NCBI GenBank assembly: GCA_001643675.2
Contig: LSRY02000039.1
Span: forward strand, 682,001-746,000
Length of the DNA: 64,000 nt
Source: Monocercomonoides exilis PA203
Taxonomy: Eukaryota > Protista > Preaxostyla
Reading direction: 5' to 3'
A program made the position numbers and the translations under genes. The notes under the pieces were generated by a model. The model was not told the origin of the DNA. It saw only the letters and a program-made list of their open reading frames with translations, and did not search any database. Positions 2,369 to 55,148 of the stretch are shown here, one piece after another. How positions within the stretch are numbered: position 1 is the stretch's first letter; each line of letters begins with the position of its first letter.

Positions 2369-3215
2369 ATTAATTTGATCCAATTCTTCTGTTGATATCA
2401 AAAATGCGAATTGAATATTTTCTCATGAAAAACAGCAATAATAAATGCGTTGGCTCAAAGTTTCTGCTAAACAATTTCATAAAGTTTATTTTGAATATAA
2501 AAGCATTACCGTATTTACTTTCTCAAAGCAAATAGTCGTGTTCTTTTTTTGTTGTTTTTTTGAGAAAACTAATTATATTTTTCTCGAATGGAAGTATGGT
2601 TAATGAACGAATCAATTAGAATAGCTTATTCAATTGCATGAAATCAAGTATCAGAACCATAAAACATCTAAAAATTTGAGTTCTGCATTTTGCCTACATT
2701 CAGTTTTTTTTTTTTTTTTTTTTTTTTAAACACAAAAAGAAATTCAATTTCGTTCGAAATAATTCAAATTCGAAATTTACAATTCGATTACGAAATAACA
2801 TTGTATCTGAATTTTCAAGCTTTTCTTGTTTGTTGATTTCAGATAATATCAAGTTTTCACATTACAAATGGGACAATATTTTGAGCTCAATGGTTTTTGT
2901 TCCACATTTCGTTAACAAATGGGTTTTATTTTTTTGAAATCATGTTTATTTATTCTAAAATTTCGGAACAAAATTATTTCTTAAATGGGAGAAAATTTTT
3001 GAAAAATCACCACAGATCAAAAAAAATACCATTATAATATTATTCAAAATGATTTCTTCCATTAAAATACTTGAAGTTCCATTTTTCGATTGATATATTT
3101 TCATTTGAACCCACCATGATTATGTTTGGAACCCTGTATTGAAATGAAATTTTTATTACATTTTTGATCAAAATAAATTCTGTTTTTATTGAAACAAACG
3201 AATGCAAGAAGATAT

Positions 3216-3469
3216 GTGTGATTATTTTTGAAATCATAACATTTTTCGGGATGTCTATTTTTCAAAAATTGTTTGTCAAAATGAAGAGAATTTGTTCTCA
3301 AATGCAAAATTCATCAAACATGTTGCAAAATCCAATGTCTAAGCTGAAATTAGATGAAGATGTTACAAACCGGCCTTATTCGTTTTCGGTGTTCATTTGT
3401 TGATATTAATGTGAAATATTCAAACCGAAAAATCTGAAAGAAAAAATATGATTTCAAAAATAATCACCC
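3216..3469 (+). mobile_element. MITE family A (254 bp)
   Basis: TIR G(T/G)GTGATTATTTTTGAAATCATA; TSD ATAT at 3212-3215 and 3470-3473; similar copy at 9064-9319. Confidence 0.8.
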
Positions 3470-3766
3470 ATATTAATTTTTGAAGAAAACCTGTTCATAG
3501 AATTTTCAAAGGACAGAGTGCTTTTCCAAAGAACGACAATTAAAGTGTGTTTCTATTGATTTAAATTACTTATTTTATGCATTTTGCGTGTTCCAGATGA
3601 ATTGTTTAATATAATGTGTGAACGTTTGTCTTCACTTTTGATGCTAAGTGCAACCAAATCAATGCTTATGAAAAATTCTTGTATATCCCACAACAAAACC
3701 GCATATACAATTCATTTTCAAAGTATGTTTATCTGCCAACAAACACGTGTTTTATCCTCTAAAAGC

Positions 3767-5480
3767 ATGATTGCTCTTCTGACCTTGTATTTTCTTCTCA
3801 TAATTCAAATTCAAACGTTTAAAAAGTATCCATCGTTACAGATCTGACTGTTTCATCATCATTCAATTTTCTGTTGACTGGAAAGAGCAAAAGTGAACAA
3901 ATTTTTGACTGTGCTTTCAGGAATATTTCTGTAAAACAAGTAAAGAACAGTTATTACCAAATGGAGCATTTGTGCTTGTTAAGTTCAATCGAAAATTGCG
4001 TCATTTATTCGTGTGTGAATGCCTTTGAAGGAGAGGCCTCGAGCAGATCTTATTCTATGCTAGAATTTGCCTACAAAAACACAACAACATTCTTTGGGAA
4101 AAGAGAAACAAATGCACTTTATAGAAAAGAACATACGGATGCAACAGAGAGTCAATCCTTTTCATTGTGTGAATGGGAAGATTGCACAGCCGAACAAGGA
4201 GGTGCTCATTATGTTCATGACAATGAAAAAACAATTTTTACTGGGGAAAATTCTTCATTCACAAGATGCAATGCTTCATCCGCAAGGTGAAGAGGGATTT
4301 TCTCTTTGAAAATTGCTGAATGCATTGTGTTTCATTCAACATTTGTCCAGTGCTTTGCAGCAGGAACAACAAATTATAGTGGAGGAGGAATTCAATTCGA
4401 ACATGTTAATGTACAATCAATGGTTGATGAGTGCTCCTTTTATAACTTCTCTGCTGCGAATGATGGAGGAGGAATTGGTTTTTTTCAAGAAACTGCTCTA
4501 AAACAAAAAGATTGCGTTATAAACTCATTCTTCAAATCATGTCGAGCGTCAAAATTTTCAACTTCTAACGATGGCGTTGTTATAAATTGGGATGGCACAA
4601 TTCAAATTATTTTCTCAAATTGTCTCTTCAGCAATTTCTTTTCCAAGTGTGGAGCAGGTGCAATGTGCCAATATGTGGATGCAAATAATAATGGAATTTT
4701 GTTTTATTACTGTTTTTTCCACAATAACACATGCAAGATGTGAGGCAACGATATGTTGCTTCATGGTTCAACATCTTATAATATTCATTTAAGTTGCTAT
4801 TCTACAAGGAAATCAACAAACAGAATTTGTTCAAGTTACAGTTCACTTGTTGATCGTAGCGATTGGCTTCGAAACGATTTCGGAGTGATCAGATTTGTTT
4901 CTTCAACCACAATAAAACCCAATGCCAAAGACACATTTGCCTGTGGACTGGATGAAAGTCATCCATGCCGCGTGATCAGCCGTTGCATCACACAACTCAT
5001 TCCAGACTTAGTTCCCAAAGTCGAAGTCTTTTCAGGAACGATTACAGAGACGAAAAATGTGAATTGTGGAACAAACGCTTTCACAATATATGGCCAAAGT
5101 GATATGAGCATAGAAACACAAATAGTATTTGAAGAATCCTGCTTATCTCTATTTTCGTTTTCTACAGGCTTATTGACTGTCAGCGATCTTATTCTTTTGT
5201 GCGACTCACCAAATGCTTATATTCAAAGAGAAAAACTATTTGAAATAACTGGAACAGGAGAGATGAGGATAAGTGCGCCAAACATATCTTTTGGAAGTGG
5301 ATACTTGGCACAAACAGCATTCACCACAGAGCTGATAAATATTCACGGTGGTATCTTTCAGATGAATAACGTGAACTGGGCACAGACTATCTCTTCAACT
5401 TTGTTGTTTTCGCTTTCTTCAGTAAATGGAATTTCATTGACACTTTCTGAGTGTTCCTTTGAGGGGATTGAAAGAACAGC
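3767..5480 (+). pseudogene. Cys-rich beta-helix-like (GGG/GGAI-repeat) surface protein family pseudogene, 3'-truncated
   Basis: Signal-peptide-like MIALLTLYFLLII; ORFs 3874-4290, 4306-4743 and 4753-5523 are in one frame, broken by two TGA stops; motifs FSLCEWEDC, YSGGGIQF, NDGGGIGF, FYYCFFHNN and CGLDESHPC are shared in pattern with 26560-27980. Confidence 0.75.
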
Positions 5481-5529
5481 TATGAATTATTTAATAGTTA
5501 TTGAAATAGAAAGAAAAAGATAAATTTAC

Positions 5530-7600
5530 AGAATCAGAAAATGAAGTTTTAGAATGTGAAGCGGCTGGTCCAGGGCAGCGCAGAAGGAAATTGTTTCGAT
5601 AGAAACCTCAATTCCTTCAAACAGTAAATACAAAACTCATTGGAACGCAGGCAAAGACACTGAAGAAGAAACACAAAATTCCACTGCATTCATCCACAGA
5701 GAATCCTCCTCATCCACAACACACAATGCTAAACTGAAAACATTCCAATAGTCTTTTTCCAGTTGCGTGACCTCATCAATTTCTGCATAATTTTATATTG
5801 CCTCTGCCAACATGCGTGTTCAAAAATGCATTAATTCCACATCTGACTTCAAACATCCTTTCCATATTCTCAATAATTTTCGCTCCATGTTTTCTTCTCA
5901 CAACCATCTTCCAGGATCGTATTGGTTTCCATTTGATTTTTCTCTTTCAGATGAATAATTCGCCTTCTGATGAGGGGAAAAATATGAAGGAATCGCAAAC
6001 TATTCCTCCTCCTTCCTCTTCCTCTTCTTTCTCCTTCAGCACTGCAAGCTCCATCAGCTTCCGCACCATTTGCAGCAGCTCTAACCGCTCTAAATTCTTT
6101 GCCACAACCAATTGCATTGCCTCCACCAGCCGTTTCAACCAGACTTCAACCCTTGCATCCGCCTACGCCTACGAAAGCACAGGCATCCTGTAATCCAGCT
6201 CCGGTTCAGCAGCGCAAAGATATGACTCACCTTCTTCACAACCGCTCTGTTCTTTGACGCCGTCAGAAGAGCTCACAGGTCAACAACATCGCACACATTT
6301 GGCAACTGCAGGCACAACGCGAAGAAGTCAATACAATGGTGCACCTCATGAACAGATTCAAATGATGGTAACGGCACACAAACAACTGAAACGCTTCCCG
6401 AAAGATCAGAAGCAACAGCTCTGGCAATATCTGCAGATGAAACAAACAGAAGAGACTCCATTTCATCTTGTGCGAATCCTATTCTAGCTGTCTTTGAAGA
6501 AAAAGAAGAAGAAGAACTTGATACATCACCACAACATATGGGATTCAACGGAGCCTTCTTCGTCTTTTTCGCATTTCTTTCTCTGCCTTGAAGTAATTCA
6601 GCAAAAACATCAGAAATAAGGATGCTTTCGATTTCATCTTATCCGACTGTAATTCCTCAAACTTTCCGAAATTCATCTTTTTCTTCTTTTCCTTTTCAAT
6701 CCCCACATTTATCAGCTACGCCTTCATCTTTGTCTTCGCCAGCACCTCCTGAGGCTCCTTTGCCTCCTTCACCTCTGAGTTGTGCTTCTTGCTCAGCTCC
6801 AGAATCTTACTCTGATTCATCCGAATGATCTCGTCCTTCTCCTGTAGCTGCTCCGTCAGCGCGCTCAATAACTTCGATATACACATGTCTTCCCAGATCA
6901 TTCATAACAGCAAATTGAAATATATACACCTCTTCAACATCTCACGTTTCGCCTCCTCATGCTTTTCATCTTCATTCCACAGCTTCTTATTGATCCCCCA
7001 GCAATTGTGGAGCAATCGCTGCTGACGATAGAACTTCTTCCTCCATCCTCTTTCCTCAGCCCTGTTGACACAAACCTTTTCTCCACAATCTTCCTCTCTA
7101 TGCACGCTGCAATACCTCACCGCATCACTTCATCGAACAGCTTCACTGCCGCACGCCTCAACCTTGGAGATTGTAAAAACAGTAGAGCTATCACCGACTG
7201 TAGCAGCAACAGGTCAAGCAGATCGTTGATCAACGTGTACGCATTTTCATCTTCCTCAGAAAAGAGCCGCTTGCGCATCGACTTTGGAATCACCAAAGCT
7301 ACAAGAGAATTAAGAAGCTGAAACATTGCACAGATAGCATCACCAAAAGCGCCACATCGTTGGCACGCACAACGCTCCCGTGCAGCAACGCACGCCGCGC
7401 CACAGCATAACCCATGAAGCACACAAGGAGATAGAGGAGACAGAATCAGCGTTTGCTACAGCTGCATAAGCTGTTGCTGTGGCATGTTCCGCTCAAACAC
7501 CACCCTTCTCTCCATATAATCCATTGCTACCTCCGACAGGTTTTGTGCAACCACAGACGATATATTAAACGAGTCAATAACATGCACCAATCATAATGAA
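5530..7600 (-). pseudogene. Degenerate copy of an unknown multicopy coiled-coil gene family ('family X')
   Basis: Fragments EQLQEKDEIIRMNQSKILELSKKHNSEVKE, SLVALVIPKSMRKRLF...LQSPRLRRAAVKLFDEVM and ICCGDVSS..DEMESLLF..VVCVPLPSFESV have diverged homologues at 11600-12560, 15226-15350 and 40270-40760; many stops and frameshifts. Confidence 0.6.
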
Positions 7601-8526
7601 TACTAACTTCTTTTTCCTTTCTTAGGATATCGAAAATGGAAGAATGCAAAAATTATTTGCGTGCTGCTCCAATTAAAGATAACGATGAAAGTTAATACAT
7701 TCTAAGCAAGTTGCAGTTTTATATATGATAACAGTTTAAAATACACTTCGTATTCATTATCATTCTTATGTTGTCGCATTTTCAAAGATAAATAAGAACT
7801 CAACATGTCGATCATTAATTGTGAAATTTTTTGAATGAATATACAACAATCAAATTGCTTTTAAGTCATTATACAAACAAGTTTTTAACTATTTATTTTT
7901 GTGCACTTTTTGTTTCATTGAAAGCGTAAATATTGAAAAATAGAAAAAAAAACTATTTCAAAAACAAATATATGAAGCTAACATATAATCTATTCATTTG
8001 CTCAATGAAGTTACATTGATAAATATTGTTGATATTCAAATAAAAGATAAGTAAAAATCATTGCATTGAAAAAGACAAATAAAAAAACTTGAAATTAACG
8101 TGTTTCAGTTAAACAACAATAATAAACGATAAAATTCTTTAAGTATTGTGTACGTCAGTTTGTGCCAACAGAGAATATTATTTATAATAAAACATCAAAC
8201 TCTTCTATAAAGAAAAAAAGAGTTCATTAATTATTTATTAAATTATTACTGTTAACAAATATGTGTTTCTGATTTTTTGTGGGACAGATCAGGCTAAAAA
8301 AATGTGATTTTTCAAAAATTTTCACCCAAATATCAATTAAATAATAAATCGAAAAGTGATAAGGTTTAATAAAAACATTTTATTATTTTATAATACTAAA
8401 ACGTTTGCTTATAAAAACAATTATTATGCTTTTTCTCTTTTGTATTAAAATTTTCTTTCAAACAATCAACAATCTTTGAGAAATCAACACCCCCAAAAAA
8501 ATAGTTGATTTCAAAAATAATCACTT

Positions 8527-8930
8527 GGGACAAAATATTTTACTTCAGGCATTTTCATTAAAAAAATATGCACTTTTCATTGTCTTTTTGAGATAAAAAA
8601 ATTCTATAAAAATGAGTCCATTTTTTGGTATTCGTGAAATATTGGAAAACTTTATGTTTCTATTTCAACGATGTGTGTTTAAGGATATGAAAATCAAATC
8701 TTTTTTGAAATTTGAGAAAGTCAAATAAAATTATGAGTGAAGCAATATTTTTGTGTTTTGTGCAAAAAAAGCTTGAAAGTCCGTATTTTCTCCCACTTAA
8801 ATATAATTCTCATTTTAGTAATGATAATGTATTTTTAAGCATTGAAATGGAAGATTGATGATAATTGATGCGAAAAAATAGTTTCGAACAAATCTCATTA
8901 TTTTTATCAAATTGATAAAAATTTTGCCCC
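8527..8930 (+). mobile_element. MITE family B (~400 bp, GGG(G/A)CAAAAT ends)
   Basis: Starts GGGACAAAATATTT and ends AAAATTTTGCCCC followed by AAAT; the first ~265 bp are clearly similar to 45171-45437. Confidence 0.65.
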
Positions 8931-9063
8931 AAATGGGGCCAATTTCTTGCATTTATGAAAAAATCAAAGATTTGCACCGGACTATTTCTGCTATCGAATA
9001 AATGCAATTTTGACATTCAAGTCCACAATAACATAAAGAAATATTCTAAGATGAGAAACATAT

Positions 9064-9319
9064 GTGTGATGATTTTTGAAATCATAACTTTTTTCGGGGT
9101 GTTGATTTTTCAAAGGTTGTTTGTCACTGAATAAAGATTTCAGATATTGATAAAAAAATTAATAAAAACAATTTTTATAACAAATGTTGAGGCTGAAATG
9201 AAGATGATGATGTCATTTGTTTGTGTTTTCATTTTTCAGCAGCCTTTTTTTAATGTTCAAGTGAAATTTTTGAACCGAAAATTTTGAAAGAATAAATATG
9301 CTTTCAAAAATAATCATCC
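9064..9319 (+). mobile_element. MITE family A (256 bp)
   Basis: Same termini as 3216-3469; TSD ATAT at 9060-9063 and 9320-9323. Confidence 0.8.
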
Positions 9320-9754
9320 ATATTTTAATGTTAAATGTGGAATAAAATCCTTAAGGCAAAAATATTTCAACCAAAATCACAAATTATCACTCAAAAAAAA
9401 TGGTTTCTGTGATAAAATTTTTTTCTATTGTTTTTTTAAAGTTTATTGTGATATCAAAAGTAATCTCTGAATATGAAAAATATTTTGGAATAACAAAAAC
9501 TGGTGTTTTGTGAAATTTTTTTTTTTTGAAAAGTGTGAGAGAAATGGAATGTCAGCTATAAATCCATCTCGATTGGGTCAATCAATATTATCTATTAAAT
9601 GCATATTTGATGGTTGTTGTCATTTTGTATAATAAGTTGGCTTTTTATGTCATCGTATTATTTCAAATCCATCATTCTCATCCATAGAAACAAAAAAATA
9701 TTAAAAAATCAGTAAAATTATTGAAAGTGAAGAATAGAACAAAACTCATTAACC

Positions 9755-9853
9755 ATTAAAGTTCAGAGAACCTTTATTCTCCAGAACAAACGAAAACAAC
9801 AACACCTCTTGTTATGAGAGTGAAGCCTGTATTAAGGGCTCAGTCGCTTATCA
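9755..9853 (+). repeat. DIRS left terminus / left ITR
   Basis: GAACAAAC..AACACCTCTTGTTATG..CCTGTATTAAGGGCTCAGTCGCTTATCA is the inverted repeat of 45980-46049; 9755-9816 is complementary to 45701-45763. Confidence 0.85.
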
Positions 9854-9935
9854 GATCATAATTATTGAAAACACTGCAACAGATCCTGCATCGGGACTGG
9901 GAAGTATTTTTACACTCAGCGGATCAATAGGCAGA

Positions 9936-10240
9936 GTGGAATTAGCTCAGACCACCTCCTCAGGCAGTGTCCCACCTCTGCAACCAGAACAATATTCATT
10001 AGGAGATACCTCTTCCGCTTCATCCCCGAATGGAAAGGATAGTTTTGAGACATCATGCAGAGAATTATTTGGGTTAGAAATCTTAGAATCCATTTTTGAT
10101 CTGATTATCGACTTTCAAGATACAGCTGACTCAGTTTCTTTTTTTGAATTAATATCCTTCCCCCCATTCATCCCATCCAAGGTTCACGAGTTTGCAAGAT
10201 CATCCAACTGTGACAAAATTGCACAAAATTCAAACAACTT
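9936..10240 (+). pseudogene. DIRS gag-like ORF, 5' part
   Basis: ORF directly after the left ITR; ...AQNSNN|L continues in frame at 23661 once the 10241-23656 element and one ACTT copy are removed. Confidence 0.65.
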
Positions 10241-11329
10241 GGGTGATTTTTTTTGATATCATAAAAAATTCCGAAGTTTGATCATAAAAAATTTTCATTA
10301 AGGGTTGGATTAATTAGAAAAACGAAAGTGATGATCATGCAAATATATTGATTAATAAATAATTATTATTAATTGCTTATTGATGTTTATTTGAAATACA
10401 TAGTTTTTTTTTCATATTTTGAGAAATTGATATTATTTCTTCAAAAAATTTTCGATAATATGATAAACAGAACAAAACATAAGTTATCTTGTTTGAAAAG
10501 CATGAAAACAATAATTAATAACACTCAACCAATCAATATGGGTATTTTTTTTTGAAAAGTCACAAAATATTAATTGATCTGAAAATCAGATCACGAGTGA
10601 TCAAAAATGTTGATCATTCCGTTACCATCATTTATTGCTGAGTATTATTCAATTGAGTTTTGTCACACTTATCCCCTAATATTACGTTTTTATAAAACAG
10701 ATTTCAAATACACATTTAACTATTGAATCACTTTTATGATTTAAATTTTTTTTTTCTTGTTTTTTGAAGTTACAGAAAAATTTGTTTATATTTCTTTGTT
10801 TTCATTTCAACTGTTCAAGTCTACGTTTTGATTTTGCGAATCGAGACTTCTTTTTCAGTATTTTCCTATATTGAAAGATAAATAGATTTTAACTTGCTTT
10901 AATTTGAATATTTTATCAGAAATTATTAAAAAAGAACATTTCATCGATACTGTCCTCATTGAATTGAAAGAAATTCAAAAAGTTGTTAATACAGAGCAGT
11001 TATTAATGTTATTGTAAAAAATTGAAGTTAGATATGTTAATTTTCAAAATAAATCACCATTTATAACAAACTATAAAAAACAATCTTTTCTCTTATTTTG
11101 ATTCATACAGTTTGTATCATCAAATTTCTTTCACCTCAGAATGTGCCTTTTCCTTCTCCCTTCCATTTTATATTGACAAATTATATAAAAATATCTTGCC
11201 ACTATCTTTTCAAATAGCATAAAATAAGTAGGTTTTTTCTGCTGGTCGACAATTCTGATGCAAATGTGAATGCTATCAGCTCTTCGGGTGGAACTTCTGG
11301 CTGACATTATAGGAAATGTCTCATCAAAC

Positions 11330-12900
11330 TTCTTGTTGCGCAGCCAGTTAAGCAGTCGTCTCATCGCTCAGCGCCTTCGTCTTCTTCAATTTCATAAATT
11401 GGATCAGCACTCCGATCAACTTCGCAATTCCGGAGGAGGAGAAGCACAGAGAAAAAAGCGGCAGGAGATGATCAGCCATCATCTTCGTCATCAGCACATT
11501 TGATTGACCCTTCGGATGCATCGGAGGTGGCGGCATCATACACGTCGGCAGCTGGGGTGTATGAAAATCACAAGAAGTCGTTGCTGAGAGAGCATCAGAC
11601 TCCTTGAGGGATATGCTGTTATGTGTCAGGCGGTGTTGCGTGGGGGTGTTGTGTGTGCGTACGATGTCGCGCTTTTGGAGATGCTTTCGGTTCCGCTGAT
11701 AGCGCTACTTCCATCGCTTGCAGCTTCGGTGAACACGAAGTCGGGGAGCAAGCGGATCTTTGCGGCAGCAGATGTGATTGCGTTCCCGTCGATCTACGAT
11801 CTGTTTGACCCGTCGTTGCTTCCGTCGGCGATAGCGCGTCTGGTGTCGCGATCGCCGCAGTTGAGGCGTGTGGAGATGAAGTTTGAAAACAAAGTAATAA
11901 ATGTGCAAAGTTGGAGAAATTGCGGAGAAGGAATTGGAGGAAGAGGGAGGATGAGAATGGAAGATGTGTTCTGTCACCTGCAGCGATTGAGCTAGCGGTG
12001 CTGGAGGAGCACGAAGAGGCGAGGAAGGAGAAAGGGGGACAAAGAGGGAGAAGAAAAGGGAGAAGACGATGGAGGGAGAGATGTGTTGAAGAATAAAATA
12101 AGCAAAAAGAGACCAAGATGTAGATGGAGAAGATGCATGCAGAGTTCTTCATGCTTCTGTATAAGATCCGAGACACGAGACTATTTCGAATCCGATGATG
12201 GAAACGCAGATGCAATAATGTTTCCAGTGTTTCAACTGAACAATTGAAGCGGAGGAGCAGCTTATCGGAAAAAGACGATGAAGATGGAATCTGATGTGAT
12301 ATGCTGGGGAGATCCATCGATTTCATCACAGAAACATTCTCATCATCATTTTGTGGGGCTTGTTGAAGCGATGCGAATGATGAAATGGAACCTTTTTTCT
12401 TTCTGAACTTTTAGCTGCCAATGCAGCCATAGCTGTAGCTGCGGATCTTTTTAGATGTATTCTAGTTGTCTGTGTTCCGTCTTCCATCATTTGATTCGGT
12501 GCTGGGGATGTGAGGCATCGTTACCACTTTCACACGATGCGCTTGAGCCAACCGGATGAATACAATGTGGCTGACTGGAAAGTGCTTCAGATGCAGTTTG
12601 ATTTCAGAGCGATTTGATTAGGCAAAGAGTTAAAGCTCGATGAAACGGTCTGAAAGAAATTTTCGAAGGAATCGTAGGTGAAGTCGTACAGGTAAAATTG
12701 AGGTTGGACTGAAGCTGAGAGTGAAGGTTTTGAGAAATAGGACGTGGAGAATAAAAGATGTGTTGTAGGCATTGTTTCGGATGAAGTGTATGCTGGCATA
12801 TCTGGTGGAGCTGTTAGGGCTGCAGATGAATTGAAATTAAGTGGAAGATGCGATATGATTTTGGCTGCCACTTGAGGACGGCAGCGCGCGATGCAATTCG
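11330..12900 (+). pseudogene. Family X degenerate copy (part 1)
   Basis: 11355-11550 is visibly similar at DNA level to 39936-40125; ORF 11621-11995 (LPSLAASVNTKSGSKRIF..SRSPQLRRVEMKFENKV) is homologous to 7117-7422 (-) and 40279-40551 (+). Confidence 0.6.
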
Positions 12901-15099
12901 CAAAGCGATAAATTGACAGATGAAGATGTTGAAAAAGCATACGTCTTGTCATGCTTCATCAACATCTTCTGCTTCTGCTTCTTCAGCACAACACAAACAG
13001 GTTCCGAGTGAGAAAGCCTTTAAGTGTGCATTTGAAGAGATAGATCATTCAATTTATCTATCCACATTTTCATCAGCTTTGCCATTTTCATCACATAAAT
13101 CTTCTTTTTCTTATTCTTCCTCTTCTTCCAATCTTATCGATTCTGATTTTTGCTTATTCTTTGAGAAATAAATTGTATTTTTTTCTGCATTTCCTTCCGT
13201 TCCGTCAATTATCCTTTTTTCATCTTCCATTTCCTGTTTATTATCACCTTCATTTTCTTTCATAGTACTTATCGCTCTAAGCAAGCATTTCAATAATCTT
13301 GATACGTGTTGTCTTCTTTTAACATATTTCATTTCAAATGAAGGAAAAAGAGAATAAGAAGAGGAAGAATTAATAAAAGAAGAAGAAGAAGAAGCTCTTA
13401 GCGATGAAGCAACATTTCCTGTGTTCAACATGCAAGACGAGCGTCTGACAATCGACTGAATTTCTTCAAACAGCTTGTTCCCTCTGGGAACTATTCATTT
13501 GGAAAAATAATACACAGTATTCGTCTTCTCTTTTGGCTTTCTTCTTCGATTTCTTCTTTTTGTCAGGCATTTTTTTGTGGAAGATATTCAAAAAGAGCAT
13601 TTGAAGTACCTTCAGAGCAGTTTGACCAAAAGATCACGTTAATTGAGATTGAAAGATATTTCATTCTGTGCAAAATTGAATCCTTCTGATGCGATGTGTC
13701 TTGCAGCTTGCAATTAGACAATTTCCAGTTTGTGTGAATTCTTTCGATCAACGAACACATTCAAAATTATTTCCTCTTTCATCATCTGCTGCTCGATCCA
13801 TACAAGCATACTCTCCATCCATCTCTCACCTTTTCCTCCATGTGTGCCTCCTTTAGTGATGCTAGTGAAGCGGAGCAGCCAGTTGCGAATCGAGAGAAAG
13901 AGTTCAACAAGATAAAATTCCAGTGAGTGAATTATTTAAGGTTGCTGTGTAGATCTTATGGTAAATGAAAGTGTGCTGATCGACAGGCTCGAGCTCAATC
14001 ATCATGTTGCTATGCATGAAACCGGATTGATGTGACCTTGTTCTTTAGCTTGTCAAATAAACAGATGAATGCTTCTGAATGGACATCTGCATTCGTGCTG
14101 GTTGCTGAGCGAGTAAAGGCTTTCTTACCCTTCACCATCTTCTCCACAGCTTGTAACAACTGTTGATTTTGATTTTGCATCAGTCTTTGTCTTTTGTTCT
14201 GATTCGTAACCATCTTCTGCGTAAGCTTTTGCTTTTTCTTCTTCTTTTTTGTTTGCTTGTTAATCAGTTTCTGTTATTACTCAATTTTTATTCTCTCCTT
14301 TTTGAGTGTAGAGCACTTTGAAGAAGAGGGGATTGTTGACAGGCTGAGGCATGGAGTTCAAAAGAGGTCACGAATGAGAAAAAAGGAAGAAGCTGGTAGA
14401 TTAGAGAGAAGATGTCAGAGAAGAGGAAGAGGAAGGACAGATTTTGGATGATGAATTTTTGCATAGAGTACATGCTCATCCAAGGAGTGTGACGCTTGTT
14501 TTTGTTATTCGTTTGGAAGCAAGCGGGACAATCATATTATGATAAAAGTGATTGGAGAGAAGAAGGAGATGCGTGTAGAGTGGGAGGGGTTTGTAGGGAA
14601 GACAATTGTAAAGAGGATAATACAATAGGACGGTGAGATGTGTGTCACGTTTATTGGGGAGAGGCTGTTTTGGAGGAGAGAGTTGAAGAGAAGTGGGAGA
14701 AAAAGAGAGATGAGATTGTTTATTGAAGAGAGATGAGTGAAAAGTGAAAAGTCTGGTGCAGAATTTGCGTTTGACATTTGATGGGAAAATGTTTATTTTC
14801 AATTCGGACACAGAGAGAGAGACGATAGACGAGTTTGCTGCAATTGAAGATGCTGTGATTCATTAAAGTTTTCCGTTGATATTGAAATGAAAATGAAGTG
14901 TGTAATCTGCCGAGTCTACAACAAGGAATGGACGATTTGGTTGTTAACTCTGGCATATTCGATGATTGCCAAGAAGAGAATTAAATATCGGATCTGTCCA
15001 AGGAATCGTTCTGGGTATCAAATAGTTGCATCATCTGCATTCCGTAAGATGTTAAGTCTTCTTCGGGTTGATTTAGATGTTTTCTTTTCTATTTTTCTT

Positions 15100-17000
15100 C
15101 TTCTGCGCAATGATGGAACTGCTGGTTCTGTCGCCTACAGCGATTGCGCTGAATTTGCCGGAAGAAAGATAAGAAGAAGAAGACGTTGGAAAGGAAAAGG
15201 AGGCGAAGTGGATGAGTGGGCTGGCAGAGCAGCTGTAGGAGAAGGATAAGATCATCTGGATGAATCAGAGGAAGATTCCGGAGCTGAGCGAGAAGCACAA
15301 CAAAGAGGTGAAAGAAGTGAAGCAGGTGAAGGAGAAGAAGTGCTGGGCTCAGCAAAGAGGAGTGGTGAGCGTGGATGGCAAGCGGAAACTTGTGGGTTGG
15401 GGTGTTACAATTTCCATATCTTCTTCATTAATTTATGCGTATGGCTGGCGGTTCCATCTTTGATTTCCTTAATTCTGTTGTTGGGGCTGTGTGAAAAGTG
15501 CATGTGCTGACGACAAGCAAGCAGAAGATGCTGTTCAAGGAGTCAATTGAGAAGCAGAAGTCAGAGATTGAGCAAAAGAAGCATGAGATAATCAAAATGA
15601 AGGCGTTGTATGAAGAGACAATGGAATATCTGGCTGGGCAGGTGAAGGTGCTGGAAGAGAAGACGGGGAGTGGAAAATTTGTTAGTGGAAGGGAAGGTGT
15701 GACAGAGGAGAAATGGGTCAGTGCGAAGGATGGGTCGAGGATAAAAAGGAGGAGGAACAGAAACTGAGGCGGAGAACATTTGGAAGCGGAGGAGGGTGAA
15801 AATGAAGAAGAAAGAGATGCATGTACGCTGTGTGAGATTCTGGTGTTGCCGTGAAAAGAACCGAAGAGAAAGGACGAAGATTGGATGTCAACAGAAGTAC
15901 CAATAGAAGTAAATAAAAAGGAAGGGAAGACGAGTGTTGTGCAGCGGCTGCATACGCTTCTTAAGCAGAAGACTAACCGCAGAGACTGTGAAGAGTCGGA
16001 GTGGATTGTGAAGTTGTTGAGTGTAACGGGGTTGAGAAATCTGATACAGGTGGTGAATCATTACTGGAAGTACAGATGATGATGGAGCATCCGATAAAAA
16101 CGGTCTCTGTTCCGATGGTGCATGTGGAATACGAAGCGATGCATGCGTTTCGGTTGCCACAAACGCGGAGGTCGTCAGTTCCGATGCAGATGCTGCTGAT
16201 GCCGCTAAAGACAGGGCTGCGACAGAAGTTGGCGTGGACGCTGTCGATGATCCAGGGAATATTTAGAGACAAGATAGCGGCAGACCTGGGCAATGGCAGC
16301 GCTGGGTGGGAAGGTGTGGTGCTTCCAAGGCAGGTCCATGTGGACTTTATTCATATACGACTGGGGGAGAAATTCTCGGAGAAATTGAAGAAAGAGGTAG
16401 TGCAGTTGGCAAGGATGCATGGGGAAGAACTGTTCCGGAAGGACTTGCTGAGATGGAGCAGTTTGGGGAATTTGTGCAGAAGGAGTAAACTGGAGGTGAA
16501 ATGCAGTTTTCCTAACAACTTGACGGTGCTTGAAGTTGTATCGAGAAAAAATTGAAGTGTCTTTTGGTTGCTTGAGGAGATACAGTCGGGGAAGAGATTT
16601 GCTGAAATATCTGTGTTTCCGGCGTTTTTACTGAACTTCAGGATAGAAGCAGCTTCTATATGTTTGTGACGAAGCTGATCTGCGAAATCCTCATCTGCGG
16701 TCTTTGAATAATGAGATTATGAAGACAGAAAGATGCACTGGACAACTTAAAGCAGGAGCTTTATGCAGTATCGAAGGTGACTGGGGAATGGATTGGGCTG
16801 AAGCTACCAGTGGAGATTATACAATCGATGGTGGAGAAGAAAGAATGGCGGTAGGCGTTGTTCCAGATGGTGCGGCTGCTGCGAGGGCTGTTGCGGCTGA
16901 AGCTGTGGAGGAACGACTCAAAAAAAAGCGATCTGCTTTGAGTTTCCTTTGGAGGATGGGCAGCGAGTGGTGCGGTTTCTGCAGACGGTGGCATGAGGAG
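15100..17000 (+). pseudogene. Family X degenerate copy (part 2, coiled-coil region)
   Basis: EQL*EKDKIIWMNQRKIPELSEKHNKEVKE matches 6770-6860 (-) and 40670-40760; VVQRLHTLLKQKT..MMEHPIKT resembles 41640-41860. Confidence 0.55.
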
Positions 17001-17339
17001 GGAGTTAATAGCAAGGCCTTGCCATGTTCTTCATTGGCATTGACATCCTCCTTTTCGTATTCTTTTTCTAATTATTCTTCCTCTTCCTCCTACTCCTCTT
17101 TCTCTTTTTTCTCTTCTATTCTTCACTTATCGATTTTTATGTTTTCAATTTTTCTTCAAATTTTTATTATGTTTCATCAATTAAGGTCATTCTCCTTCCA
17201 TCACTTGTTTCTTTTCACATTCATTTTCTTTCAAAGAATTTTTTGAAAGTGTCAAATATATAGTTAACATTGAGAATGTTTTGTCTTCTTTTTGCTTATT
17301 TCTGAGTAAATAACAGAAAATAAGAAGGTGAAGAAGGTG

Positions 17340-17900
17340 AAGAAGAATAAGACAAATATTGTTTTGAACAAATTGGAATGAAATGTTGTGAAATTGGAGT
17401 GTTAAATGAATCAGGAGAAGAAAGAGGAGAAGAAGAAGGAGAATAAGATGATAATGAAAAAGATAAGGAGGAAGAGGAAGATGAAAAGGAAGAAGAAGAA
17501 GAAGAAGAAGAAGAAGAAAAAGAAGGAGAAGAAGAAGAAGAAGGAGAAGGAGAAGGAGAAGAAGAAGAAGAAGAAGAAGAAGAAGAAGAAGAGAAAAGGA
17601 GTGGAGAGGGAAGAAGCAGATGTGATTGGAGAAGCGATGGGGTCAACAGAAGAGAGAGGAGAAGGAGAAGAAGGTTGAGAACGAGGAGAGAATGAAGAAG
17701 AATCAGAAGAGGAGGAGAGGAGAGAATAGCTGGTTGATAGGGATTGAGGAGAAGAAGAGAAAGAAGAGGAGGAGGAAGAAGAAGAAGATAATGGCGAAGA
17801 GGAAGAAGAAGAAGAAGAAGAAGAAGAAGAAGAAGATAATGGCGAAGAGGAAGAAGAATAAGAATAAGAAGAAGAAGAAGAAGAAGAAGAAGAAACACTT
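17340..17900. repeat. GAA/GGA-rich microsatellite tract (poly-Ser coding remnant on minus strand)
   Basis: Long (GAA)n runs, same texture as the Ser-rich host gene at 49981-64000. Confidence 0.85.
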
Positions 17901-17916
17901 TAAGAACAGAAGCTCC

Positions 17917-18760
17917 TTACGAATTTCTCGAGCAGTTCTTGAATGAGGAGCTTCCAACTGAAACACTTCCCGAAGTCGAACTGTCAATCGAAATGATGCA
18001 ACCTTCAGACAATTTCACTCCATCGGCATCAATTCCATTCAGCACAGCATTTCCACATTGCCCAATCTCAACAACATTTCTTGTTGATTCAACATGTTCC
18101 AGCTTCACATTTATCAATGATATTTCATCTCCACAAAACAGAAACAATGATTTCTTGAATGATAGCATTGTTATTGAGCAGTTGTCAACATGCACAATTC
18201 CATTTTCGATGCTCAGCAATGATGAATCGATAACAACAGCTTCAATGTTTTCTGATGCAAATGTCGAAGAAAAATCAACAAATGAAAGAGAAAGTTGGCC
18301 ATTTGCTTCAAGAATAATTGAATTGCCTGAAGAGGATAATGACTGATCAAAGTTGAATTTCAATCTTTCAATCCGAACAATCCCTGTTGTTGTGATGATG
18401 CTTCCCTCGTCACTAACAATTGTTGAGTTCAGATGAACCAAAGCAGATGAAATAGATTCAAGGGAGCGCACAATAACATTCAACGCACTGCTTTCTCCAT
18501 TGATGATCATTTCCCCTAATATCAACAGCTACGAATTGCGCGAAGGGATGATGTGTTGCACTCCAACATCTAATGACTCACAAGTAAAACGAAATTCTCC
18601 GCATTGCTTGCTGTCTTCCTAGTTTTTATCAGCAGAAGATACAAATAGCGTCTCACTCTGGTATTTCACATCATTCAGCTGAATATCCATTTCTTCTTCT
18701 AAAGAGTCTGTTTCGCAGTCCCATATTGTAGGATATTTCACAAAATGTGCTCTGAAATAT
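17917..18760 (-). pseudogene. Internal fragment of Cys-rich surface protein family
   Basis: IWDCETDSLEEEMDIQLNDVKYQSETLFVSSADKN*EDSKQCGEFRFTCESLDVGVQHIIPS followed by beta-helix-like ORF 17917-18525; truncated at both ends and fused to the GAA tract. Confidence 0.6.
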
Positions 18761-21700
18761 GCAGCAAACTTTCTAAGCTTAAAAAAAGAAAGTTTATATT
18801 TTAATGAATAAATAATGCATTCATATAAAACCAAAACGAAAACTGTTTGACTTACTTGTTTTATATCTTTATCAAACTTGTGGGAGGATTCTTTGCATTT
18901 ATTAAAATTCCAGGCGCATTCTGCGCAATGAAAAAATATAATCAAATAAAATATTGATTTATCAACGAATCTCAATTTGTTTATGAAAAGCAATCAAAAC
19001 AAACTTTGAAGATTTCATGAGTCAACAATTATAAAATAGTCCAAGCTTGAAAAAACCTTTTCACATTGAAATACTGAAATTTTTATTTTGATCAAAATAT
19101 TGGATACATAATATTTTGATCCAAAATGTTTATTATCGAAAAAAGTTAGTTGTGAATCGACAAACATTACTGTGAAAGTTTGAATTTTTCATTGAAATAA
19201 TGGAAACGGAATGTTTTTTAATTAACTTCCATGGGTCAGATTTCTGATCTGTGGTGACTTTTCAAAAAAAATTACCCATATCTTAAGCAAAAAATCGTAA
19301 AACAATGTTATAAAAAAAGAATAGAATAAGAAAAGTTGAAATCGATAAATATTAAATGAAACCAATTAATTTTCAAGTGTTTCATCATCTGAATCGCTAA
19401 CCTTCATCTTCAATAGCCTTTTTTCCTTCTAATGCGTCGATTTCTAAATCTTCCGAAAATTTTGAGATTTGTGTTTTCTTTTTTATTCCTTCTTTCAAAT
19501 TTTAAGCGTCCTGGTTTTCGTCAGAAATTATCATCTCCAATTCCCTTCACAATCCATTCACCCTGGGCATTTTCCATACGAATTCGCTCTCCCAACTCCA
19601 TAGCCACCTTGTACAATGATATATCCCGCTTTTATTCATTTTCATTCTTTTCCGCCTCCTGCCCTGAAAGAAGCACAAAAAACATCAACAAAGAAATGTT
19701 CGTATAAAGAAAAATAAAATAATGACCAAACTGCGCTTCAACTTCTTTTTGCCAAGCACACTAATTTCCATATCCATCATCATTCAAAAACTCAATTTCA
19801 TCATTTCAGTCTCAGAATGGTGAAATTGCAGCAAGGAAAGAATCTCTAAAAAATACATCTTGCATCTCACTGGAGGATCTTTTCAACCTGTCCACATTGT
19901 GTTGCCTGTTAGGATATGTTTTTCTGTTTTTTGCATGATCATCTCCTTTAATAATATTCTCAAATACCAAAAGAAGTATTTGATGTCTATCTCATCAACA
20001 CCTTGCACATGAGGGATATGGGGTAGAGAAGAGATGGAAGAATATTTTTTGTGGCAGGGGGCGAGAGTTGGGTATTTTATGGAATGTTAATCTTTCGAGA
20101 GGGGTTTTTGAAAGGAAGAAATTCTGAGACAAAAAGATGGGGAAGGAACAGGCGGAGATTTGTCGAGGAAAATGTAGAAAATATATAGGGAAGTTGCTGA
20201 GGATGATAAAGAAGGTGATTATTGTTGATTGGAGAAATAGATTTTGAAAAAAAGGAAAAGAGGGTGAAAGCCGATGAGAAGAGGGAAAATGAGAAATGTT
20301 GAAAGACTTGAAAGAAGGGTATTTTTTTGAGAGGAGAAGAATGTTTTATGGAAGAGGATGGGAAAGATGAAGAAAAGGAGGGGATTGATATTTTTTGAGA
20401 AGTTTGGAAGCCAAATTGAAAAGGAAAACAACAAAGAAAAAAACTGTAAGAATTTTTCATTTTCTATTTTTTGAGGGGAAAGGAAAGGAAATTGCAAAAA
20501 GAAAGTGAATTGACTTTGGAAAAATACAGCTTTATTGATTTCCGCAATCTATTCGTCATATATTTTGTGACTGAATTTTTCAAACAAATCAGAAGTTTAT
20601 ACATCAAGCGAGACGTTTTGACCAATCAACAACATCACGTAAAGCGTCCTCGTCATCTATTTCAGGAATGATAGTTAACCGATTAATTTCTCTGCTACCA
20701 CGTCATTTCCTTCTTTTTCGTCTTCTTCTTCTTCTGTTAATCCCCTTTCATTCAATCAATCATCTTCCTCATTTCTCAGTTTGCAAATATAAAATTCGCC
20801 TTCTCACAATTCACTTGCTTGTTCAGCAACAAGCACGCCTGTTATGAATTTCATGGCCAAAAATTTACAAAATTTTCTTCAGTCAAATATTGCTTTTTCT
20901 TCTTCTTCTTCGTCGTCGTCTCATCTTCGTCTTTGTCTTCGTCTTCATCTTCGCGTTTTTCTTGACCTTCTTCACATTTTTTGCTATTAACCTCATCAGA
21001 TGTTTTGTACACTTATATTTTTCATACAAATAGGCCAGAATCATTTTCTGTATATGGAAAGAATTGTAAGATAATCACTCAAAAGCTGCCAAAGATTCGA
21101 GGATATCCGATTTTATTGATAAGCTTGAAACTGCCTGATAAAAAAATTTTGTTTACAATTAACTGCTCCTTCGAAGTTTTCTAAACAGACACAATATATT
21201 GTCCAATCAATGAAATCATATGAAACCATATCAGCATCTTCTTCGAAAATATTTAAAGATAATAAATGGATTTCTCTGTAACGGCATGCATTCACATTCC
21301 TCCTCTTTTTCAATGATATTTCCTACAACTTCGTATTGGATCATTCCATTTTCCTTGGAATGAATATGAGCTGTTCAATCAGCAGCCAGATAATTCGCCC
21401 AAATAAATATTTCATTCAATTTTCCCACTCTCAACAGTATCATCATCGATATCAAAGCCTTCTGTTGGATTGCAGGATGCTCATCTGAACCTCTCTTCTC
21501 TTCTGCAGCACACATCCTGCTATGTTTTGGAGCTTCGAATAGAATTGATGCGCAAGCTGCGCTGAATGGAGTGAATGGGCATCGAATGAAAAATGGCAGT
21601 GGAAGAGGGAAGGAGCTTCAAGGCACATTACATTCGTCCCCTCGCTTTATCACATAGCCAAGAAACGAAGAAAGAGGAGAGTGGGTTCAAATGGAAAAGG

Positions 21701-23660
21701 CAAAGAAGGCGGATTTCAGAAGCAAATTGATCTCAGAGCAGAGGAAAGGGAGACAGCAGGAAGAGCCAAAGGCGAAGACGAAGAAGAAGGAGAAAGACGA
21801 GTTTTGCTCGTTGCAAATTGACGATTTCGACACAAAACTTGCACATGCAGCAACAGAAAGGAGGAGGAGGGACATGGGAAGAGAAGTAGGAGATGACGAT
21901 GAAGATGAACAGCAGCAGACATTTTGCTTGTTCAACAGCGCCTCTCATCTGCCCAGCTGCACACTCAAAACATCATAGCCTCTTCAACATTTTAGACTCC
22001 TCCTTTTTCTCCCTTTCCACACACACAATTGTCTGCTCCTTCTGCTCTTGTTGGAACTCCGCTGAAGCCACTCACTCCTTCTTCTCCTGCCACATACTCA
22101 TTTTCTCTCGCACAGAAATCTCTTGACATTCCTTACCCAAGCACTGCCTCTTTTTCGAACATTTCTTCTTCCTCTCCTTCCTCTCCTTTGAATTCCTCTT
22201 CCACATCACAGCCTTCTTCCCGCTTGCATTCTTCATCTGCCATACACACAAATGATTCACAACTTTCTTCCTCTAACAATATTTCAAATGCAGTTTCTCA
22301 TTCTCCTCCTTCTCTTCTTCTTCCTTTGCTTTTCCTTCTTCTTCTGTCTTCTCCTCTGCTTTCTCCTCTGCTGTCTCCTCTTCTTCCTCTTCATCTTCTC
22401 CTTCTCCAACAATCTCCACTTCTTCCTCTTTTTCTTCATTATCTTCATTATCTTCATTATCTTCATTATCTTCATTATCTTCATTCATTTCTTTTTATTC
22501 CTCCTCCTCCTTATTCTCTTTTGCCTTTATTGCAACTCGAGTACTGACGGAGCAATCGCTGCTGGTGACAGAACCGCATCCGTCATCCTCAACCGCTCCT
22601 TCTCCATTGCCTTCTCCCTCTTCTTCTCCCTCTTCTTCTGACTCTTCTTCTGACTCTTCTTCTGGCTCTTCTTCTGGCTCTTCTTCTTTTTTCGCTCACC
22701 TCTTCAATAATACTGAACCAGCTGATTTTAATGTCAAGGAAAAAGTTCGCGTGCGGAAGTTTGTTGATTTCTGTGTGCCAGGTTGACGTTGATCATGAAA
22801 CAGTTTTTTTTAAAGGAGTTGAAGGAGAAGGTGTTTGCGAGAAAGGTGAGGTGGAATATGTTGTGGTTGTGAAAAGTGAGACCGGCGATGAAGGCGTGGT
22901 TGAGGAAGAGGGAGATGGCTGAGAGGAGAAGAAAATTAAGAAAATGAATGATGCAAATTCGCAGAAAAAGCTTGACAAGTTCTTTTTACGTGCAAGAAGC
23001 GACAAAGCAATGTAATGAAAGATTAATTAGGTAAATATTGGAAATTAAAAATAACAACATGAGTTGTATTTTCAAAAGGGGGATTCAGATGAAGTGAAGC
23101 AGAAATAGAAGAAAGATGGGTGGTGGATGGAGAATAAGTTAAAGTATCATTTCATAAGAAGAATGAGTAAAGAAAAGAAGAGATTGACTCTATTGTGGTC
23201 ATCTCTTGTTGCTTCCCCTCCATTTTTTTTCATTGTTATAATAAGTCGTTGAACGACTCAGCTGGAGCAGGAATTTGGCGATGATGTTCCAGATCAATAA
23301 ATATGAAACACATTTTATAAAATTTTGAACTAACCAATTTTATTTATTTATTTCTATCTATATCATTTTATGTATATTATTTTGTTTTGCAAGTTATGAA
23401 ATTTGTCATTTGCTTTTTTATAAGTTTGTTTCCTATTTTTGAAACTTTTTCAGAAACTTGATCGATATAATATGTATTATATTTTAAAAAAAGGTATGAT
23501 TTTTTGTATTCATGAATAAAACAAACATAAAAAATTATTTTAAATGGTAAATATTCAAAAAAAAAATCATTTTAGGTTGAAAGATCAAAAAATACCACAA
23601 TAGTTATTATTTTTTCGATTTTTGATCTTTTTTTATGATGTCAAAAAAAATCACCCACTT

Positions 23661-25140: not shown

Positions 25141-28100
25141 GGCATATGTGTAAATTGTACCACTTTCAGTTTGCATTTTTTCAAAATTTGAATATTATAG
25201 CGTTAATCTACTCAATTTAACTAAGCGATTCAAGGAGGGAAATTTCGAAATTCGATTAAAAATTTTCTCTCTGAAATTCAAAAATTTCGACACCCATAAT
25301 ATTTTTATTTTGATCATATTTTATTGAAATTTCTTTTTCTTGCTTTACATAGTTCGAATGAATTAATCAATTCAATCGAACAAGATAAAATATAGTTTTT
25401 ATTGTTTGTCTCGATGAATATTTACCTATATTACTTTTTTCGTTGCTTATTTTAATTGATTTGATTATTTAATTATTCGTAAGTATTCGCGCAATTAAGG
25501 TTTTCACATTCAAGATATAATATATATCAACTTATATGAAAGGAATTAACATGATTGGCTAGAAAAATATTTATAATAATAAGATTTTTATATGTATTTC
25601 ATAATTATTGATTTATATTCTATTTTTGGTAATGTATTCGTTGGAACTGGGTGAATTTCTGTTTATGAAAGGATGAAGGAAAAGCTGGATTGGGGCAGAT
25701 GTATTTGTTGAGTGAGGTAAAGGAGCAGTTGGCATTTGGAAAGGAGAGGAAAGAAGAGGGAGATGGAGAACATTGGGATGGTATGGAGCTTGTTGCAACA
25801 AGAGAGGGAAGATAAAGGAAGGAGAGCATTTGAATGATATTATGCAATGATTGGGATGTCGCGGGATGTCTTCGAAAATTCACAAAAAATACTTTATTTT
25901 TTGTGGATAACCTTCAAATGCTGTATTTTATTTTTTTAATAATCCACATTGTTATTTTCTTTTACATTCCATCTTCTTTTTCGTTCATTGCTGTTTGCGG
26001 TTTGTTATTGTTTAAACAATTTTTCATCACTGTTTTTAACAAAGCATTCACAACAAGCTCAATAATAACAATGCACACATGTTTTATTTTTTCTTTGGAA
26101 AGCTGCTGACGTAAGCCGATACAATTATTAAAGATGAAAGTGCGAATTAGTGAAAACTTGCACAAATAAAAAACAATCAATTCAATTATTCTAAATTTTT
26201 AAAGAATTTATAAAAAAAAGATAAAAAAATAGCAATGAATAAATTGGAATTTCAAATAATTTGGAAAAAAAATTGCAAAACTGGTTCTAAAAATTGTTTC
26301 TGCCTGGATCAGGAATTATGTACCACTCTATCTACGGTGTGTGATTAGATATTTGGGTGCAGAGCTCAAATCTATTTTTTTTTTCTTTAATAGCTATTAT
26401 TAGAAACTGTGGTGGAGTGGGTACAAATAGCATATCCAAGATTGGATCCACTCCTTAAGACCTGAAATCAACCGTTATTTTAGCCAATATAATTATTTTG
26501 ACTCCAATAGACATCACAAACACATTCTGTGATGAATTTCTTGCAGCATAGTTAAAGATTTAAAAAGCGAACTTGTTCCAATCATACTCAATTCCTTCCC
26601 TCTTCCTGTTATTATCATCTATTTTTCACCAATATTGATCTTCGTCCCTTCGCTCACTTGCCTCTCCCTCAGCAACGTTATTGTTGAGCTCAGCTGCGCC
26701 AGACTCACTCCCACTGCATGCCCTACTGTCTTGCAAGGTGCTGACTCGCTCATCCCACAAAGATTGTTTGCGTCATCCCCACTCACCCCAACATACCGAT
26801 CTTTCATCCCTTTCTTCAGCCAGACCCTTTTTTCTGTGTTCTGATAATTCCAACTACCAGAATAATATCCGTGGCATACTCTCGTATCATTGCTGTTCGT
26901 TGTATATGATTCATAGAATGGGTTATTCGAGGAAAAGAGATTGTTATTGTATTGAAAACAAACATCGTGGCCAAATGGAGTGGAAGCGTTGCAACTGCAA
27001 TCGTGGAAGAAGAAGAAATAGCAATAAATATTGTAACTTGGGGCTGTTGATTGATATGGATCAAATCTCATTCCTCCACCATATGACACTGCTGAGCACG
27101 AAATAAACTGGAGGCTCCTCATTTTGAATGCTGCTGGAACATTGTAACAATACATCCCTCCGCCATAAGAATTTGTAAGAGAACACGAAGTGAATGAGCA
27201 CTCAAACACACAAGCGCTCTCCCCTTTACCACTTTCTGTTCCAATGCAGTTAGATCCGGAAGTATTAAAAGTGTGAAGATAAAGTCCTCCTCCTTAGCCA
27301 TAAGAAGAACATTTTTGAAATTCACATCCGCTGATCCGAACACATGATGAAATCACATAAATACACATCCCTCCGCCACATTGATTTTGCGCGGTGCATG
27401 AGTTGAACGAATTGTTTTCAATTTCAACAGATTTGATTTTTGCACACATAACTCCCCCTCCATCGTAATGGGCATAACAATCATTAAATGAGCAGTGCTT
27501 AATAGAAACTGATGCGTTTGATTGACTGTGCATGCAGATAGCCCCGCCATTTGAAGCAATGTCTTCCCATTTATTTTCTGTTGCTGTTGTCCTCGATCCG
27601 TTCCACTCGCACCAAATGAATGAATTAGCTCCATTGGTTGTTGTGTTTTGTCTCACTGGCTTTAATGGTACCTCTGCAGTTCCTTTACATTCAACATTTC
27701 TTGTCCGACAACATTTAATAAATGAGGTGTTTGAGGCAGTCAGAAAGGCAAAGGGGTTGTTGAGGGAAGGGACAATTCCGCCATCATACACATCACATAC
27801 TGATGAAAATGAGCAACTATTCATAAAACTTGATGTTTGGGTCGACGTTGTTGTTGGAGATGGGCAATCTGAAGATGCTGTTGAGATATTGAAAAATGAT
27901 AATTTGGAGAGTGAAACAAAGGAAATGGAGGGCGATAAGAAGAATGGGGAAGAAGATGAGATACGCGATTCTCTCACTGAAATTCTTCATTTTTTGCCTC
28001 CTTCTCTTCCCCATGCCTCTTAGTGCTATATCGTATAATATCCCAATGTAGCTGTATCCATTTTCCTGCTTCTTCTTCTGCTGCTTCCGAAAAGATTTTT

Positions 28101-38124: not shown

Positions 38125-38364
38125 GGGTAATTCTTTTTGAAAAGTCGCAAATGTTTAATTTTCAAACAAATCAAAAATCTCACTTCTTGATCAAATTTCG
38201 GTCCCCTCTCATGGAACTTCACCAAAGTGGAGGATATAATTTGACAATGCTATTTATCACATTCCTGTAAAGTTGCATAGACGGGATTTGAAATTTGATC
38301 AAGAATAGAGATTTTTGATTTGTTTGAAAATTAAACATTTGCGACTTTTCAAAAAGAATTACCC
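38125..38364. mobile_element. 240-bp MITE with 75-bp TIRs
   Basis: 38125-38199 vs 38290-38364 inverted (2 mismatches); GGGTAATTCTTTTTGAAAAGTC ends resemble those of 10540-19277; TSD ATAT. Confidence 0.9.
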
Positions 38365-45437: not shown

Positions 45438-45698
45438 TTCAAATGAACAAAATTTCAAAAATCCCATTTCAAATGAAAATTTTTTATTATTAGCAATTTT
45501 GGCTTGATTACAACCGATGAAAATACACACGAAAATTTGCCAAAATAAATGATTCACGAAAAAATGTGATTACTCGCTGTCTTGATAATAACCGAGGTGA
45601 TTATAACCGAACTTTACTGCACGACAATTAGAACAGTTCAGACAAGCGAGGCGAGTCACATTCATGTAGATATATAACAATTCCCAACTATTATTATT

Positions 45699-45795
45699 CC
45701 CATAACAAGAGGTGTTCTAGTTGATCGTTTGTTCTGGAGAATAAAGGTGCTCTGTGCTTTAATTCGTAAAGAACAAACAAAACTTCAACACCTCT
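45699..45795 (+). other. DIRS internal complementary region (ICR)
   Basis: 45699-45763 is complementary to the left terminus (9755-9818) and 45764-45795 to the right terminus (46024-46055), joined at GCTTTAAT|TCGTAAAG. Confidence 0.85.
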
Positions 45796-45979
45796 ATTTC
45801 TTGCCACGAGTTTAACTCTTCCCACTCTTCGAGTTTATGTTATCTCACAGTTGACATTCATGTTCGTTTTGTTTCACAACAGCCTCTGTGCACTTTGTTT
45901 TTGGCACAATTTCCTTATTTTCTTTATTATTCGTTCAATATTTCTATTCTTTCTCATATCCACCGTATTTCACTTCAAT

Positions 45980-53449: not shown

Positions 53450-53481
<32 letters not shown>

Positions 53482-55109: not shown

Positions 55110-55148
<39 letters not shown>

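Follow-up and report, generated by a model that had tools for sequence, protein, structure and literature searches.

Nested transposons, probably Pack-type Sola2, carrying host-gene fragments in the genome of Monocercomonoides exilis

The 64-kb stretch of Monocercomonoides exilis contig 35 analyzed here (positions 682,001 to 746,000; hereafter the window, in which plain coordinates are counted) contains probable Pack-type Sola2 transposons inserted into other mobile elements and into one another. Very probably, they are non-autonomous cut-and-paste members of a Sola2-type family, with exchangeable interiors made of host fragments and with the transposase encoded elsewhere in the genome. In support of this, we observed paired ends with target duplications, recurrence of the elements together with their cargo, empty sites, transposases lying between the same ends at other loci, and broken pieces of host genes in two of the three large elements. 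These three are called A, B, and C, as are their end types; C followed by a number (C1, C2, C6, etc.) denotes one of the 101 contigs of the 82.3-Mb genome that was searched.

Nested elements and their recurrence across the genome

A scan of the window for GGG...CCC pairs flanked by a 4-bp duplication ranked A, B, C, and a 240-bp miniature inverted-repeat transposable element (MITE) as the four top-scoring pairs. Element A (2987-8327) is a 5,341-bp Sola2-type element, or 5,083 bp without the 254-bp MITE nested in it, with 24-bp terminal inverted repeats (TIRs) and the duplication AAAT. Element B (10241-23656) spans 13,416 bp including C and has 28-bp TIRs and the duplication ACTT, while element C (10540-19277) measures 8,738 bp and has 24-bp TIRs and the duplication ATAT. 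All three are non-autonomous, no strand being assigned to any of them, and no element encodes a transposase within the window. Three MITEs, all with the duplication ATAT, complete the set: the 254-bp one nested in A (3216-3469), with B-like, slightly decayed ends (GTGTGA..); one of 256 bp (9064-9319) with both ends slightly decayed, GGATGA.. among them; and the 240-bp one (38125-38364), with C-like ends and long internal inverted arms, whose end motif recurs at many other loci. Intact MITE ends are 1 position off B or C ends over their first 11 bases, in agreement with the Repbase rule (PMC4455052), and these elements are short, non-coding, and multi-copy, with TIRs, a duplication, and ends in common with an autonomous element. 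The ends and 4-bp duplications of all six elements, first proposed in a sequence-only reading of this DNA, were confirmed.

Four insertions were verified by empty sites. Element A lies in an older MITE of the 254/256-bp family (2921 to about 8526), whose halves (2921-2986 and 8332-8526) can be aligned over their full length with the MITEs of 254 and 256 bp at a score of 153, against a shuffled maximum of 41.5. The 254-bp MITE is absent from the copy of A on C40, and the site of C is empty in the copies of B on C69 and C10. Element B interrupts the 5' part of a DIRS retroelement; each DIRS half was aligned to uninterrupted copies, without rebuilding of the reading frame, and the halves are contiguous on C2 and C69. 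Both interrupted targets named by the sequence-only reading, the MITE around A and the DIRS around B, were therefore confirmed. That reading had also described single giants of 5 to 13 kb; their ends are real, but the 13,416-bp unit is a B proper of 4,674 bp with the 8,738-bp C nested inside, not one load of cargo. The order of insertion is DIRS, B, and C on one side, and MITE, A, and 254-bp MITE on the other, C being the youngest large element of the window. Two more GGG...CCC pairs, at 2870-8930 and 8527-8794 with the 4-bp duplications AAAT and ACTT, have weaker and different ends; they are possibly an outer MITE and a 268-bp MITE that would give a four-deep nest around A.

The large elements recur throughout the genome. 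Copies of C are 95 to 97% identical over 7 kb on C32, C80, and C6 and over 5.3 kb on C23; full-length relatives of A (70 to 81%) with their own duplications occur on at least five contigs (C49, C80, C23, C34, and C15), and relatives of B (77 to 82%) on many contigs. Exact matches to the end patterns numbered 57 for A, 264 for B, and 63 for C together with its MITEs, and reversed controls gave 0. The duplication was identical in 9 of the 12 A-type pairs elsewhere (the remaining 3 being one base apart), in 13/13 B-type pairs, in all 11 B-type giants tested (17 to 29 kb), and in 10 of 12 large C-type pairs, two C35 pairs in an inverted duplication being left out. The flanks of the elements at C12:1183627-1195398 and C6:795385-795624 mirror each other, indicating that each element is the center of a larger inverted duplication; the former and C35:1534-31884, also within an inverted duplication, were excluded from the duplication evidence. 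Among the 38 matched duplications, the window's six included, all fit ANNT, 33 fit AWWT, and ATAT accounts for 22. With ATAT this frequent, the evidential weight is carried by the rare matched duplications: AGAT on elements of 25.3 and 24.8 kb, ATGT on one of 28.7 kb, and also ACAT and AATT.

Transposases of the three end types

The copies of C on C32, C6, and C23 run on into a transposase, and on C32 and C23 a match to PF25273 lies just past where these copies cease to resemble C. The C-type element on C32 measures 14,934 bp, has the left end repeated in inverted orientation over 93 bp at its terminus, and contains an 854-aa transposase open reading frame (ORF); that on C23 measures 25,265 bp, is flanked on each side by AGAT, and has one stop in its transposase. 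Some 700 bp outside the C32 element is a right end of B type, and C32:25056-27056 encodes a transposase of that type; in this region (about C32:25000-49404), a B giant thus probably encloses the element, in the same way as B encloses C in the window. For the A type, a 10.4-kb element on C40, flanked by ATAT, has a 796-aa transposase frame 51% identical to the C-type core. The ends of the window's B are those of transposase-bearing giants: among the first 100 of the 264 B-end matches listed, 16 pairs lie 17 to 29 kb apart, and a scored transposase was found inside 12 of these 16. The B-type giant on C1 is 19,759 bp long, with the duplication ATTT, 28-bp TIRs, and a single long frame, a transposase of 1,077 aa beside which no frame exceeds 210 aa; its likeness to the window's B is confined to the ends. 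As A, B, and C ends each enclose their own transposase elsewhere, and as B and C cores are 34% identical, each of these end types, of which there are at least three, is paired with a distinct transposase sequence.

A genome search with the transposase core scored 122 matches of 399 candidates, many of them in frames longer than 1,000 aa, and homologues are annotated as MONOS genes, at least part of the set as uncharacterized host proteins. Another group of transposases, sharing 70% identity with the C-type core, occurs at C91:1532300, C91:904961, C48:626621, C27:39860, and C58:643590. The transposase of the C1 giant also contains a USP deubiquitinase domain (PF00443; E 3e-15) with its Cys, His, and Asp motifs, and the Pfam scan gave no such match in the C-type transposase. 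Altogether, the autonomous relatives measure 10 to 29 kb, a multiple of the usual length, and in addition to the transposase they hold cargo with broken host-gene pieces. The sequence-only reading had supposed a Pack system served by a transposase encoded elsewhere; such a transposase was found, but since the giants carry both transposase and cargo, the family is more than a non-autonomous Pack system.

The assignment to Sola2 is based on several features of these proteins. Three aspartates (D492, D576, and D619) are conserved in 99 to 100% of 73 relatives, with a CxxC..H motif upstream, and the transposase model (predicted local distance difference test 88.6) has an RNase H fold with the IstA transposase as best but weak match (E 1e-4); a sequence search of PDB with the transposase profile gave no match. 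A fixed TTAA duplication is typical of Kolobok, piggyBac, and Sola3, and these candidates were discarded, with TTAA in 0 of the 38 duplications. Sola2 TIRs are reportedly described in the founding Sola paper as short and starting with 5'-GRG; intact ends in M. exilis all start with GGG, and Sola2_DFa-2 starts with GAG. The succession of the motifs DxCxxC..H, DxKxN, WxDx(x)xHF, and HGKSxxDxxF is identical in Sola2_DFa-2 and Sola2_PPa-1 (PMC3627910, supplement), and Sola2 duplications are 4-bp AWWT (PMC3627910). From this match to published Sola2 proteins and from the AWWT duplications, the M. exilis transposases are placed as probable Sola2-type DDD transposases, by a motif comparison made by eye against the two printed sequences; the earlier guess of a Sola1/Sola2-type transposon is thereby supported. 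If the transposases formed a Sola1-like lineage or a new clade instead of belonging to Sola2, the family name would be wrong and the mechanism the same. The nearest outside relatives are unnamed and only 35 to 41% identical, and the PF25273 scores are borderline (25 to 28 bits); nevertheless, the motif-for-motif agreement with both Sola2 proteins, zinc-finger-like motif and three acidic sites included, and duplications of the form published for Sola2 make such a lineage improbable.

Host-gene cargo and the competing explanations

The cargo was recognized through the genome's own genes, Pfam scans of the window's cargo ORFs giving no match. On the plus strand of A, positions 3778-5499 can be aligned in one frame, broken by 3 stops, with a host receptor-like kinase gene of 2,581 aa, at 67% identity to its residues 161-733. 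On the minus strand of C, positions 17893-18771 match this kinase family at 61% identity in another segment, nearer the C terminus, also with 3 stops. The 2,581-aa host ORF encodes a transmembrane helix, and its C-terminal tail is a degenerate kinase matching PF07714; it belongs to a family of over 100 homologues with open frames near 2,600 aa, which are at best 61 to 73% identical to the cargo. The genome paper reported kinases that overlap unclassified repeats, and the source genes are apparently these. Cargo copies lack gene ends, and the cargo forms a mosaic of gene-internal fragments in both orientations. The A-type kinase fragment is also present inside two C-ended elements of 4.9 kb, so that cargo is not confined to one end type. 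At three loci, the left half of the C1 giant is present again together with its cargo (91 to 96%), and about 39 other scored loci match this giant solely in the transposase region (88 to 92%). Thus, the window combines TIRs and duplications, host-gene fragments in parts of A and C, no transposase of its own, and recurrence with new duplications, as in Pack-type systems. The earlier proposal saw mosaics of host-like gene fragments in the large elements; a host-gene origin is established within A and C, for part of each, and not within B. The possibility that the cargo was single-copy syntenic DNA fell away, as it is multi-copy and, in A and C, partly broken host-gene DNA.

We propose a model in which a DDD transposase from larger copies elsewhere would recognize the 24- to 28-bp GGG-initiated inverted ends, excise any DNA between them, and insert it at ANNT sites, mostly ATAT, with duplication of 4 bp. 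The window copies would be mobilized in trans by such transposases. Their interiors would be exchangeable, pieces of host genes and of other elements being copied in, transposed as a unit, and then left to decay. Cargo may enter by template switching in gap repair, as proposed for Pack-TIRs (PMC8277862), and elements may also swap interiors by recombination. Such exchange is suggested by identity that shifts in blocks along copies of C (97% then 85% on C32), by C-type elements with the left end on both sides (on C32, C6, C23, C24, and C18), and by a 122-bp palindrome where the C32 copy departs from the window's C.

Several points weigh against this model. The evidence for movement comes from sequence. 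At the observed frequency of ATAT, a single ATAT match is weak (chance of about 0.38 by our own arithmetic). The Sola2 label depends on the by-eye comparison, and some giant lengths may contain nested insertions, the giants having been read at their ends and in a few interiors and in full on C1 alone. The cargo of B matches a dispersed repeat, of which the one copy read, on C25, has no B ends and is also broken, and no intact source gene was traced; an argument from intron retention in this cargo was ruled out by the same broken homologue. Moreover, the RNA contigs, drawn from three runs within a single study, lie on the cargo of the C32 element and on the 3' third of its transposase, whose 5' two-thirds are left almost bare.

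As to other explanations, the pairing by chance of independent MITE halves around ordinary genomic DNA had been raised with the first proposal. The short, AT-rich ends, the abundance of MITEs, and the predominance of ATAT among the targets speak in its favor. This explanation has next to no probability left: complete interiors of A, B, and C are found again at many loci, bounded by both ends and flanked by new duplications; B ends pair left with right in each of the giants tested; and empty sites exist, so that chance pairing is already refuted. Composite transposition, in which smaller elements pair up and move the host DNA between them as bacterial composite transposons do, would apply in particular to the C-type elements with two left ends. 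These, the palindrome on C32, and the presence of the distal half of the C32 element on C12 and C17 as well are in its favor. However, A- and B-type elements have one left and one right end, and the cargo mosaic does not resemble a contiguous gene neighborhood. We regard this route as unlikely, though with an appreciable chance of being correct; it may supplement capture, not substitute for it.

One may also ask whether the cargo is functional, the elements serving to spread intact receptor-kinase genes or regulatory RNAs. A single gene family feeds the cargo of both A and C, unclassified repeats overlap kinases according to the genome paper (PMC8767320), and RNA contigs are at least 90% identical to the kinase-like cargo of the C32 element. 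Functional cargo is nonetheless doubtful to a high degree, given copies with stops and without gene ends, a C1 giant without any long frame other than the transposase, and, by inspection, no scored long kinase frame inside the 16 giant B pairs; the RNA may derive from intact host genes. Pack-type capture by Sola2 elements is the explanation that we retain as the most likely.

Neighboring features and known systems

The DIRS retroelement that received B extends from 9755 to about 46050, stretched by several insertions, with terminal-repeat pieces inverted at 45698-46049. Just after its reverse-transcriptase region lies a separate 4.0-kb element (25141-29139), its 312-bp arms being reported as 100% complementary and its flanks showing an apparent 8-bp duplication (AGACCTTG). 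Inside is a fragment of the receptor-like gene family seen in A and C, and this element is of a different superfamily that also captures cargo. A 739-bp element at 42730-43468 has 189-bp arms 99% complementary and resembles the 240-bp MITE subterminally, its ends not being GGG. The window also holds an alpha/beta hydrolase fragment (PF12146) at 46561-47043 on the plus strand and, on the minus strand at 49981-63996, an ORF of 4,671 aa that encodes leucine-rich repeats and a PP2C phosphatase domain and reaches the window edge.

The M. exilis genome contains 28.9 Mb of unclassified repeats, suspected by its authors to be expanded kinase families (PMC8767320). The Sola2 family gives an identity to part of them, and some of the kinase-like DNA is dead transposon cargo. 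It is conceivable, although we would not expect it, that giant Pack-Sola2 elements make up several Mb of these repeats and helped to expand or shuffle the receptor kinases, with the USP domain countering ubiquitin-dependent silencing or degradation; if so, that role would explain why the B type is the most abundant and the largest. Cut-and-paste efficiency is thought to drop above about 6 kb of cargo (PMC6431247), and many natural elements of 17 to 29 kb have moved as units here despite this supposed limit. A transposase tolerant of large cargo, if active, could be of interest for gene delivery.

Large passenger-carrying Sola2 elements have precedents in slime molds, where Sola2 DFa-1/2/3 of Dictyostelium fasciculatum and PPa-1/4/5 of Polysphondylium pallidum measure 10 to 15 kb and carry Fanzor (PMC3627910). 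They share with the M. exilis elements short TIRs, a 4-bp AT-rich duplication (AWWT; ATAT, AAAT, ATTT), the transposase motifs, a large size, common modules joined to unrelated interiors, and members without transposase. They differ in their passenger, an intact Fanzor there and broken host-gene pieces in M. exilis, whose elements reach 17 to 29 kb, with more than 100 transposase copies and a USP domain on the B-type transposase that was read. Pack-MULEs and Pack-CACTA of plants and Pack-TIRs of animals likewise combine TIRs and a duplication, multiple copies, host-gene fragments, and movement in trans (PMC6431247, PMC8277862). They belong to other superfamilies, however, and whereas Pack-TIR cargo has a median of 224 bp and most Pack-MULEs are elements of 1 to 2 kb (PMC6431247, PMC8277862), M. 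exilis cargo is kilobases long and is carried by transposase-bearing copies too. The enlarged En/Spm elements of Chondrus crispus (16 to 20 kb) are oversized DNA transposons of another superfamily (PMC6431247). Helitrons and Helentrons, again of another superfamily, have an OTU-like protease domain on their mobility protein where M. exilis has USP/UCH (PF00443) (PMC6431247). For oxymonads, we found no paper on this element family or on a Pack-type Sola in the literature consulted, from which Repbase Reports and most subscription journals were absent. Our analysis adds the genome-wide counts, ties three end types to three transposase types, and places the window elements among them. Large Sola2 elements with passengers and the capture of host fragments were already known; what is unusual in M. 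exilis is the scale, the range from MITEs to 29-kb elements, and the USP fusion.

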